A stretch of 64,000 nucleotides of DNA from Tubulanus polymorphus (Eukaryota > Animalia > Nemertea): contig NC_134033.1 of assembly GCF_964204645.1 (NCBI RefSeq), positions 11,354,655 through 11,418,654 of the forward strand, read 5' to 3'. The notes below the pieces were generated by a model that saw only the letters and a program-made list of their open reading frames with translations, did no database searches and was not told the DNA's origin. Numbering within the stretch: position 1 is the stretch's first letter; every line of letters starts with the position of its first letter. Position numbers and translations under genes: made by a program. This document shows, in pieces, positions 32,701-38,700 of the stretch.

Positions 32701-35700
32701 ACTCCGTTAAGACATATCGATTATTACAATTTTCGTTATAAGATTGAGACGACCGATTCGATGGATATGTCAGTTGACTCGGTTGGTCGAATAAACCCTC
32801 TTTTCATCTACTGATCATTTGAGTCTTGATTCTTCGATGAAATACTGCTAAGGATCGAGTCGAATTGATGTGATATGGTTTTTTATTCTAGCTTCGTTAC
32901 CAATGACGAAACCGAAAGCCGATGATTTGGCATTGATAATGTATACTAGTGGTTCGACGGGATTACCGAAAGGCGTCATGATCAGTCATCGAAACCTGAT
33001 GAGCGCCATGTCCGGACAAAATCCTAGAATGCACGACTTAGGGTAAGTGAGAGTTTCATTCAGCTCTTTACGCAGGTATCAATCTACACCCCCATCGGAC
33101 ATTCACCATTTTAGACCCCCTTTTGAATAGGTGTTGATAAAATGTCTTATGTCTGATGTTCGTAGTCCATCTGTTATTTCATTTTCAATTAAGAGGAGGT
33201 CGTAAATAAATGGAAAACCTGGATGATCACTTTTTGTTAATGTGCTGATAAAATAACAAATGTCAGGAGTTGGCTACAACATTAATTACATAAACCATTT
33301 TAGAACCGATAATTTTCTCTTATTTCAGGAAACGGCCAAATGATACGTACATAGGATATCTACCATTAGCGCATGTATTAGAATTGTCTTGTGGTAAGTT
33401 CTTCTCTAAGAGTTCTTAGTAATTTCGTATCAAAAAAGAGGGCACAATTGATAATTGATTACTGATAAGTAGATAAATATGAGATTTGGCGTTTGGTCAT
33501 AGTTGGAGCTGTACTCGGGGGCCATACCAAAAAAAAAATTGTTAAGAGTATATCATCCTAATATTTTTCATTTGGGTCATACTTTCAATTTTTCTTTCAT
33601 CAAAAGTCTCGATTTTGTGTTTCAATAATTTTGAGTGAAAAAAAACATATTCCAAAAGCTACCATTTTGGGGGCCTTTAGTATAGGGATGTCCCTTGCCT
33701 TAGAAACAGAGGGGCCTGTCAACCTCACCCGCCAGTTATGAAAAGGCAAACAAAGATTTTTCGATTTAACTTTGGCAACTTCTACTTTTTGGTTTGATGG
33801 GTTGAAATAATTTGTAGTAGTAAGCTTTCAAACTAATCGTAAACTTTCGCTTCACCTATTCTCCCAGTTGATAGTTTATATATAATTTGCAGAGGTTTCC
33901 TGTTTGGGGCATGGCGTGAAGATCGGCTATTCATCGCCGTTAACTCTGTCCGATCAATCGAGCAAGATTAAACGCGGAAGCAAGGGCGACGTATCTGTAC
34001 TGAAACCGACACTGATGGCTTCTGTACCTGTAAGTAAAGATTGATGTTTTAGATCCTACGTACCTCGACTTTCACGACAGTTTTCATAAACAAGTGAACT
34101 TTTGATTGAAACGTATTCAGGTTTAGGAGCTGTAATGGATGAAAATGATGATAGTAATGATAATATTTTGTCTACAAAATAACTTATTACAGCAAGAATT
34201 AGTTATAAGAACACACTGACTTAATAAGTGCTGACTTTAACCTCAGCCCAATTGCTACTAACCCTGATAAGCCTTATGCTGTAATTGAGATTTGTTTTGT
34301 TTTGTTAGGTTATAATGGATCGCATATACAAGAACGTTTGGGATAAAGTGAACGAAGGAAACCACATAATGAGAAAAATGTTCACGGTTGCTTACGACTA
34401 CAAACATAAACGCATTGAACAAGGTCTTGATACACCAGTATTTAACAAGTAAGTTAAACTTCCTGAACCTCCTTGAATATGCTCTGGGATGTGTAGATAT
34501 TTCCACCTCCCAATCCTCCGTGCGCTAGGATTCAAACCTGCTGGCCCCTCGAGACTGTGCCGTAGCACAAAACCCTGCCAGAATGGACCCTAGACATCCT
34601 GGGCATAAAGACAGAAATTGCGTTCAATTATCGTCACGTTTTAAGTCTAAAGATTTTGGAATTCTTGCTTACATCAAGGCAAACAATCTTTGAATGCACC
34701 ACCGGAATAATGGATTTAAACACTTAATTCTACCCTAGTAGTACCCTTCATAGGCCTAACTTAAGTTGATGAGTTGGAATCTATCTATAAGCACACATAG
34801 CAGAACATTACTAGAAGCAAAACATAACTCGACAAACTCAAGGTCTGCAATTTTAGACACTAAGTAACTTCGCGGTTTAGACAAATATTTGAGTAATTCT
34901 ACTTGTACCTGAGTTGTACCTCATTCTGATATTTCCTGTCTGCGTGAGTGAGGAGAATTTATACTGGTTTGTATACATTGAACATTTTCTGTCAGTATAC
35001 TTGGTCCTCAAAACATCAAGCACTGGACAATATAATATATGATGAAATTCATCACCTAGAGCATTGTTCCAAAGAGGATGAATCCTATTTTCTGTTCTAT
35101 ACTTTCATCTATCTGCCAGTTTCAATTGTGGTCACTTTGATGACAAACTTGCCTACTTTATCCAACTCTATTACTGGGTAATTAGCTCTGGGTAAGGTAA
35201 TTAATTCCTCAAGACAATGTGATTGAGACTTGGCCGTTTGATATGAACTCTATTAATTAGCTCAATTAAGGTAATTAGTTCCTCGAGTTAACGTGATCTA
35301 AGACCTTGCCATTTGATGTAGATTGCCTGAACAGTCCTCCAGTGTCCACCTTCTAGGAATGAATACAATTCTCTTTTCACTCAGTTCTCCTGGGTGAAAA
35401 TCGCCCTTTGTCTCCCGGTATAAATACAACCCATCATCGCCGAAGTTAACCATATCGATTCTGATATACAACCGAAGAAACATTCAAACTTCATCGACCT
35501 CGTCGTGCAAATATACATCAACACCTGCGAATTTCTGCTGAATATCTAAACGTCTGCGATGGATCAAGATTTGGCTATAGATTTATACGAGCGAATTAAA
35601 ACGCGTTATTTAGCGGCTTGTACGAAAATCGATCTCCTCGATCAGAAACTGGACCGATTGGAAGTGCAGTACCGTCGAGCGAAACGAGATAGTCGCGACC

Positions 35701-38700
35701 GCGACCAGGCCGCTCCGAACAGCGTTACACGCTCGTGTCGATTTCATCGTAAACTTCAAATTACGACGCTAGAGGGCGTACGCAATGCTTATTACGAATA
35801 CGCGAAAATGAAAGCCGACGAGATGGAGATGTTGAGATACGCCTGTTTCGGAGATACAGCTCACTCAGTCGACGATCAACAGGATTCGTCTATGGAAGTT
35901 GATGAAAACTGAAGACAGCTGCTCGTGATGAGTGTCATTACTACTGTAGCTAGAAGAGGGAGACAGTGAAGTGATGTTGGATGACGGATTTTGAGATAAA
36001 ATGCTACCATTTCGCTGCAGATTGAAGATTGATGATGTAAGAAAGTCGATCTCATATGGAACCAGGCTGATGCTTTGTTGATTAGATATCGAAGAACTAA
36101 GGTTGCGGATCGAGATGAAGCGATGCTGGGAAAGCTGAATAGAAGTTGCCGCTGATTTTGCCCCTAGTTTGACCACCAACAATCGTCGAGACTGATTGTG
36201 GTTATCGCGATTGTAAAGTGTAGGTTCCTGGAACCTAATAATGTTACGGAAAGACTTAGCTCGACTGCTTTCTGTTTAAACCCATTACACGTAGTTGATT
36301 ACTTCAAGTGAAACACTCGCTATGATATCGCCTACAGATTTATTTATGCTGCCCTTGTTTCACGAATTGCACTTTTCAGATTTGTTTTTTCGTTACTTTT
36401 TTAGAATCGTGTTTAAAAAGATTCGTAAAGTTCTCGGCGGTAAGGTGCGTCTGATGTTGTCTGGTGGCGCCCCGTTGTCATCGGAGACCCAGCGGTTTAT
36501 GAACATCTGTTTCTGTTGCCCGGTGCTGCAAGGATACGGTCTGACTGAGACGTGCGGAACTGGGTCAGTTACAAACCGTAAGTTTCTACGACTTGTCGAT
36601 TTCAATTGGGCGATATCAGGTGGTCCGGTTCAGTTCAGTTCTGAAGATGTTGCGGAGTAACCCATACGGGTCTCAAGCAAGATTTTATATCCCAAAAAAT
36701 AACTTGAAAATACTAGCTGAATATGATCGATATATGCAGGCTCCCTATGACTTCTTGATTCCTTAGTAACTTCAGAAACTATATCCAGGAATGACCGATC
36801 TGTAGGGACCCTGTATATCCTGGAATGACTGATCTGTAGGGATCCTGTATATCCAGGAATGACTGATCTGTAGGGACCCTGTATATCCAGGAATGACTGA
36901 TCTGTAGGGACCCTGTATATCCAGGAATGACTGATCTGTATGAATTCTGGATATCCAGGAATGACTGATCTGTAGGGATCCTGTATATCCAGGAATGACT
37001 GATCTGTAGGGACCCTGTATATCCAGGAATGACTGATCTGTAGGGACCCTGTATATCCAGGAATTACTGATCTGTAGGGACCCTGTATATCCAGGAATGA
37101 CTGATCTGTAGGGACCCTGTATATCCAGGAATTACTGGTCTGTAGGGACCCTGTATATCCAGGAATGACTGATCTGTAGGGACCCTGTATATCCAGGAAT
37201 GACTGATCTGTGGGGACCCTGTATATCCAGGAATGACTGATCTGTGGGGACCCTGTATATCCAGGAATGACTGGTCTGTAGGAACCCTGTATATCCAGGA
37301 ATGACTGATCTGTAGGGACCCTGTATATCCAGGAATGACTGATCTGTGGGGACCCTGTATATCCAGGAATGACTGATCTGTGGGGACCCTGTATATCCAG
37401 GAATGACTGGTCTGTAGGGACCCTGTATATCCAGGAATGACTGATCTGTAGGGATCCTGTATATCCAGGAATGACTGATCTGTAGGGACCCTGTATATCC
37501 AGGAATGACTGATCTGTAGGGACCCTGTATATCCAGGAATGACTGGTCTGTAGGGACCCTGTATATCCAGGAATGACTGGTCTGTAGGGACCCTGTATAT
37601 CCAGGAATGACTGATCCGTAGGGATCCTGATACGTTAGTTGGAAGTAATTCCTCTGAATGCGGGTTTTGTTTCATCGACAAATTGTTCTACTTTCTCGTT
37701 TCATCCAGATAAAGACCTGCGTAAGGGAAGATGCGGCGCTCCGATGTCGTGCAACGAACTCGTTTTACGAAACTGGGAAGAAGGCGGCTACAAGAACACG
37801 GACAAGCCGCACCCGCGTGGAGAGATCCTGATCGGCGGCGATTCAGTCGCGATGGGCTACTACAAGAATGAAGCGAAAACGAAAGAAGATTTCATGCAGT
37901 TCAACAATCAGCGTTGGTTCTGCTCGGGAGATATCGGCGAAATGGATGACGACGGCGTTTTACGAATTATCGGTAGGATTTACAGTCGTCTTCTCGGTCG
38001 AGTTTCATGAAAAAGTTAAAACGGTTAAGTTTGAATTGTTGCCGTCATTGAAAACATGAAGTAACCAATAGCAATTAACCAAATCTTTGAGTTATACTTT
38101 TTCGTGAAACTGGAGGTTGATTTGCAAGCGTGAGTTAGGCTTAAGATACTTTCTCGACTTAAGATTAGTTCATTTTCATTCAGTTTTTACTCCAGAATCT
38201 TGATATTAACTTCACAGTCCAATCTTAATCATAACTGTGAGCTATGAATAAACTCTACGAGCATTTGCAATTCGATTTTACAAATAAGCGAAATCTTGAA
38301 TATGACTTTGATTTACAGAATTTTCTGTATTCTGGGGCCGGTAGACGTCACTTATGTTACGATTTGAGATTAACGAGGAAATAGATAGATCTCTTTTCGT
38401 TGCTGTTTATCTCCGTGTGATCGCAGCTATACAGTACTATCCGTAAACTGAACGACTATTTTACTGTATTTACAGATCGTAAGAAGGATTTAGTGAAGTT
38501 ACAGGCCGGTGAATACGTGTCGCTGGCGAAGGTCGAAACGACGTTGAACATGTCGCCACTGGTCGAGAGCGTCTGCGTGTTCGGCGACAGTACGAAAACG
38601 TACGTGATCGCGTTCGTCGTTCCGAGTCGCAAACAACTTGAAACGCTCGCGAAAAAACACAACATCCCGACTGAAGACTGGCAGGCGTTATGCAACAATC

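Follow-up and report, generated by a model that had tools for sequence, protein, structure and literature searches.

An intronless gene in an ACSL intron of Tubulanus polymorphus comes from an unnamed family in which histone-type 3' ends are common, and appears to have lost its own

A 117-codon reading frame in an intron of the ACSL gene of Tubulanus polymorphus is a real, intronless gene with its own promoter, and a member of an unnamed protein family whose genes commonly carry a histone-type 3' end signal. Comparison with its paralogues indicates that this gene, copy A, has lost a working signal of that type. The account we favour, with a probability of about 0.55, is that the locus arose as a DNA-level duplicate from this histone-type family, that its end signal decayed, and that copy A would still be transcribed but would no longer end in the histone way. 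New here are the loss of the signal from copy A, a degenerate duplicate of its domain behind the stop codon and an upstream cluster of TAATTA sites. Coordinates refer to the window, the whole 64,000-nucleotide stretch of DNA that was analysed.

The locus up to the stop codon of copy A comprises the following features.

34449-36404, plus strand: host ACSL intron, the ninth counting from the first coding exon seen (GT-AG, phase 2)
35179-35297, plus strand: four TAATTA sites (35179, 35198, 35254 and 35272) in a duplicated 74-nt unit, from motif counts and paralogue comparison
35419-35424, plus strand: TATA box, TATAAA, downstream of the TAATTA cluster, from the sequence
35559-35912, plus strand: copy A, an intact 117-aa ORF for a predicted antiparallel helical hairpin with a loop insertion of about 10 aa and an acidic tail, from the ORF, paralogue matches and AlphaFold

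The intron opens with GT at 34449 and closes with AG at 36404, and ACSL exon pieces, searched singly, matched AMP-binding families. A preliminary description had proposed that a TATAAA box, a leader and a clean ORF form an independent gene here, and each of these elements was present: the ORF has no introns, and no ATG occurs throughout 35425-35558, the leader of copy A. Transcription is expected to start near 35448-35450; in most paralogues the TATA box lies 55-160 nt 5' of the ATG. The CpG-rich composition noticed in the ORF was likewise borne out, with an observed/expected ratio of 1.97 in copy A, close in kind to the ACSL exons (1.54) and unlike the 5' part of the intron (0.42). That the ORF might be an alternative ACSL exon was rejected, in agreement with the preliminary description, as the exons on either side already join in frame in phase 2. 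An ORF at least as long as copy A appeared in 29 of 2000 resampled introns, but homology settles that this is a gene.

A search of the T. polymorphus genome with the single copy A sequence returned 17 paralogues (E 8e-18 to 6e-4), and a profile search raised the number of family loci to 25. Copy A matched the profile at E 1.2e-33 over the whole domain, the profile including copy A itself. Outside this genome, 1182 clusters at 50% identity matched the family profile. The multicopy family of small proteins in molluscs and annelids named in the preliminary description is real, with relatives in bivalves, an annelid and a nemertean: Mya MAR_001624-001631, Magallana K1PH20, Ostrea LOC125679921 and Lamellibrachia LSAT2_008627, while one paralogue is identical to NCBI LOC141898434 of T. 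polymorphus. These relatives were reached through a conserved paralogue and the profile rather than through the copy A protein, with which a word search gave no matches. No Pfam family covers the EGxRNxYYEYA hairpin proteins. Literature searches, which left most subscription journals outside their scope, found no paper on the family under the LOC141898434, Mya, Magallana, Lamellibrachia or Ostrea identifiers, or by phrase.

Copies are only 37-51% identical to one another and have in common the core motifs FxxAC, RYxRA and EGxRNxYYEYA. Copy A shares these motifs, the hairpin fold and the acidic tail, and keeps the conserved core residues C21, Y38, A41, E72, G73, R75, N76, Y79, Y81 and A82. It deviates at F17, Q23, N28, R37, F60, Y62 and R65, several of these changes being clade-wide. 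It is set apart from the rest of the family by its place in a nemertean clade, a diverged Arg/Tyr tip, the loop insertion, the decayed second domain copy and the relic 3' signal. Against its nearest paralogues, dN was about 0.55 and dS 2.6-3.2 or saturated, and codon-position identities were near 0.58/0.65/0.39. Together these comparisons show long-term purifying selection on the protein; the dN/dS values are averages along extended branches and do not bear on selection today.

AlphaFold modelled copy A as two helices (residues 3-48 and 57-104, pLDDT 86) followed by a loose acidic tail, in line with an earlier guess of two amphipathic helices. The conserved surface is rich in Arg and Tyr at the tip of the hairpin. 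Structural comparison upheld the two-helix hairpin but yielded only generic matches: the p85 iSH2 domain, the ING N-terminus, the ESCRT-III core and prefoldin also have a pair of long antiparallel helices, with Z about 10-12 and TM about 0.7, at less than 17% identity, with no significant E-value and none ranking above unrelated rows. The modelled likeness to coiled-coil hairpins gives no evidence of homology. Searches of PDB sequences, Foldseek, VIA-align and the Atlas assigned no function to the family protein, and domain, sequence and structure searches found neither a histone fold nor a linker-histone domain in copy A. From the conserved surface residues and the gene architecture, with a fold that matches only generic hairpins, we tentatively suggest that the protein may be a small chromatin- or nucleic-acid-binding hairpin whose acidic tail could contact histones; the main alternative is a coiled-coil subunit of some other complex.

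The main finding on the family, absent from the preliminary description, lies downstream of its stop codons. According to published accounts, no cellular mRNAs other than those of replication-dependent histones finish in the SLBP stem-loop in place of poly(A) (PMC4604434, PMC10730174), and the mechanism of their 3' end formation has been set out (PMC10730174). Histone-type stem-loops, with a 6-bp stem and a 4-nt loop, were found 25-145 nt 3' of the stop codon in 15 of the 25 paralogues (11 fully paired, four with one mismatched pair), and in two further paralogues the loop is altered and the downstream element strong. The stem-loop matches that of H2A, H2B, H3 and H4 in the histone repeat of the same genome, and each family copy of it is followed by an element matching that found 3' of these four genes. 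A model built from histone and family signals scored both sets of loci at an equal level. Beyond this genome, the stem-loop signal was present 3' of both Mya genes checked and at 14 of the 17 metagenome loci that could be assessed, with some redundancy among these; it was absent from two relatives, one in Tubulanus and one in Lamellibrachia, whose annotation is that of ordinary genes. None of eight paralogue ORFs checked was on record, whereas a copy lacking the stem-loop was. A search of 20 paralogue loci against Rfam gave no family at the gathering score, and a search of the genome for a U7 snRNA gene gave no convincing candidate.

Family genes also resemble metazoan replication-dependent histone genes, which depend on SLBP and the U7 snRNP, in having no introns, a TATA box, and an arrangement in tandem arrays, divergent pairs and dispersed single copies; the tandem arrays occur in some other animals. 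They differ in their product, a helical hairpin that is no histone and belongs to no Pfam family, and in their promoters, which carry TAATTA clusters that the four histone promoters checked lack. Given this combination of signal and architecture, family mRNAs are probably cut by the U7 snRNP/SLBP machinery, would carry no poly(A), and would be supplied alongside histones in S phase or cleavage.

Copy A is an exception. The region 3' of its stop codon holds four features.

35977-36158, plus strand: copy B, a decayed second domain copy consisting of the N-terminal half only, with a frameshift and stop codons, from its BLOSUM score against shuffles
36037-36042, plus strand: candidate cryptic splice donor, GAT/GTAAGA, within the nested unit, from the sequence
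36223-36235, plus strand: likely relic of a histone stem-loop, with arms GGTTC and GAACC kept but separated by 3 nt rather than 6, from arm score and pairing
36240-36259, plus strand: likely histone downstream element, normally spaced but weak, scoring 9 bits where paralogues reach 16-28

Copy B was read with X at its stop codons. Its best-preserved part (36036-36155), which lies in the reading frame of copy A and has the same lineage-specific loop insertion, scored 84 against a maximum of 52 among 1000 shuffles. Codon-position identities of 0.46/0.67/0.33 across 24 codons suggest that copy B went through a coding period before its disruption. A minus-strand ORF of 105 aa (35865-36182) was taken as a shadow of copy B and set aside.

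The relic stem-loop begins 65 bases 3' of copy B and keeps five outer pairs around a collapsed loop. Copy A has no canonical structure, a 6-bp stem whose 4-nt loop has U as its first and third bases. Arms and downstream element together nevertheless scored 22.4 bits, compared with at most 10.4 elsewhere on both strands of the 64 kb, and none of 300 resamples reached this value; the 9-bit downstream element alone was equalled by 25 of 518 window tiles and is significant only together with the arms. The score was trained without the copy A locus, its loop-free form having been devised after the relic was noticed, and a strict covariance model did not detect the element. Because the strict model misses it and the looser score was chosen afterwards, we regard 36223-36259 as a likely rather than a proven relic of a histone-type signal. 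Neither AATAAA nor ATTAAA precedes the host acceptor, and Rfam gave no match anywhere in the intron. In our tree copy A falls within a clade (support 98/96) that mostly keeps the histone-type signal, so the loss in copy A is derived.

Several lines of evidence bear on how copy A came to lie in ACSL. Both an upstream promoter and an element that would lie beyond the cleavage site are present at the locus; a copy made from mRNA would have neither, so a retrocopy origin was rejected and the sequence argues for duplication at the DNA level. Nesting in host genes, as judged on 1.5-kb flanks, is frequent in the family and occurs on either strand: paralogues lie in or beside LARGE-type, dynein, NAF1, RecQ, polycystin-2, beta-mannosidase, TRIP13, Vps41, BBS5 and phosphatase genes. 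Same-strand nesting, singled out in the preliminary description as a special feature, thus loses weight. Three paralogues (in LARGE-type, dynein and NAF1 genes) have an intact signal on the strand of the host, so the arrangement is tolerated, and these copies rule out that same-strand nesting forbids a histone-type signal. Among copies with a checked host, 4-5 of 7-8 same-strand loci showed loss or alteration of the signal, and none of 5 antisense loci did (P about 0.08 by a two-sided Fisher test, the loci being not fully independent), no more than a hint of a link between same-strand nesting and signal loss. A more far-reaching reading, unlikely as a whole though worth stating, adds to the proposed use of the histone-only U7/SLBP route by a family widespread in nemerteans, molluscs and annelids that copy A is a natural exit from it, favoured since a working signal on the host strand could cut the host pre-mRNA.

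The promoter region of copy A has also been kept. The TAATTA sites lie 140-240 nt 5' of the TATA box, and at least four of them within 400 nt would occur with P about 2e-4. The upstream element is identical at 24 of 26 nt to one paralogue promoter; most paralogue promoters have 2-8 TAATTA sites, often adjoining TGACA, whereas the four histone promoters checked (H2A, H2B, H3 and H4) have none. TAATTA is a homeodomain-type site, and short intronless TATA genes with TAATTA clusters are typical of early zygotic transcription. By this analogy the nemertean copies may, on balance, be driven by homeodomain proteins in the early embryo.

On the account that we favour, a DNA-level duplicate of a histone-gene-like, non-histone family would have landed in the ACSL intron. 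The locus would at first have been tandem or two-domain, its second unit decaying together with the 3' signal loop. Transcription of copy A probably continues, without ending in the histone way. With no loop that SLBP could read, its transcript probably ends at the site of the host, most likely continuing into ACSL exons 10-13 and using the host 3' end or a weak cryptic site, and would thereby fall outside SLBP control. That copy A has stayed open while copy B decayed counts in favour of this account. The read sets compared with the stretch gave no spliced joins: X1 behaved as DNA, X2 and X3 were patchy and unspliced, and X4 had no coverage, host exons included.

It could also be, however, that copy A is dying or has died recently; without a 3' signal it would make no stable mRNA, and its ORF and promoter would be intact only by lag. 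Consistent with this are the broken signal and missing poly(A) hexamer, the dead copy B next door, the redundancy offered by many paralogues, and substitutions at residues that the family conserves, F17Y, F60C and Y62F among them. In one sample (S2; read sets X2 and X3), moreover, the contig departs from the reference before 35596, at a TTAA in codon 13, and may represent an insertion allele. Against it, the ORF, TATA box, leader and TAATTA cluster are all intact despite many changes in copy B and in the 3' signal, the core residues are retained on a branch that is not unusually long, and other stem-loop-less paralogues also hold open frames. We judge it improbable, although it is the most serious competitor.

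Considerably less probable is that U7-dependent cleavage still takes place at the relic hairpin although SLBP would not bind it normally. Its arms can still pair (7 bp with a 3-nt loop), the downstream element is correctly spaced, and the two paralogues with altered loops and strong downstream elements count in its favour. Compared with the histone genes, however, the loop of the stem-loop has been lost, and the hairpin is without the four-base loop whose positions 1 and 3 SLBP contacts (PMC4604434); nor does any other copy with a downstream element have a weaker one than copy A. Slightly less probable again is that the locus persists chiefly because of what it does to ACSL, either by serving as an internal promoter or by transcriptional interference, the preliminary description having raised interference with the host. 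A same-strand promoter 5' of exons 10-13 and the candidate donor at 36037 would fit, but the protein sequence itself appears to be under purifying selection, the family is present in many unrelated hosts, and a first ORF of 117 codons would block translation of a shortened ACSL. That copy A is a transposon or virus fragment, an identity that the preliminary description had named as a possible refutation, is largely refuted: the family is dispersed and multicopy, and at another genomic site a similar stem-loop lies 3' of a small, unrelated ORF that neighbours a Polinton-like capsid ORF, but there is no transposase, RT or other mobile-element domain, there are no bracketing or terminal repeats, paralogue flanks have only a short promoter motif in common, a narrow search of viral contigs gave no match, and identity among the copies is as low as 37-51%.

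Copy A is accordingly an exception among its family rather than its best example, and its use is as a natural loss-of-signal allele, for which the intact, loop-altered and fully lost paralogues serve as controls when asking what the signal does and how well a host intron tolerates it. If family mRNAs are indeed processed as proposed, a conserved non-histone family using the histone end would overturn the histone-only rule and would explain why annotation that relies on poly(A) misses family genes. A further implication would be an unknown protein produced together with histones.

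Two contigs assembled from sequencing runs X2 and X3, which derive from one sample, differ from the window at the family copy nested in the ACSL intron. In a 781-nt contig from X2 and X3, 385 unrelated letters precede the TTAA at window position 35596, within codon 13 of the 117-aa ORF, and this junction may represent an insertion allele in that sample. A low-depth contig from X3 omits 36202-36275, a segment spanning the relic stem-loop of the copy. A tandem repeat occupies most of the following ACSL intron, and three other stretches of the window hold presumed genes.

Window 36780-37629: 34-nt tandem repeat, 25 copies
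Window 432-710: exons, presumably of an MO25/CAB39-like gene
Window 11979-14889: exons, presumably of an importin-alpha gene
Window 50335-52404, minus strand: single ORF of 689 aa, presumably a DUF229-like gene

In the histone repeat (L065), the stem-loops of H2A, H2B and H4 carry the loop UAUC; H1 was not found among ORFs longer than 85 aa in its 10.2-kb unit. In two paralogues of the family the loop is longer and non-canonical, but both arms of the stem are retained and the downstream element is strong.

L021:1855-1907 and L035:1849-1911: paralogue stem-loops with altered loops

Another family member, P0212, ends in a C-terminal tail of SPSY/SPTP-like repeats resembling the RNA polymerase II CTD.

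Across the whole genome, the stem-loop model gave 112 matches, many of them outside both the histone repeat and the 25 family loci; these include clusters on C3 near 21.24 Mb and on C12.

L062:1174-1550 and L064 (C12, near 11.06 and 11.49 Mb): 90-aa Cys-rich, RING-like ORF with histone-type end

This ORF, for which a Pfam search returned no match, adjoins what we take to be a Polinton-type capsid-like ORF. It is followed 3' by a canonical histone stem-loop and then a downstream element, and appears to be a second kind of non-histone gene bearing a histone-type end.
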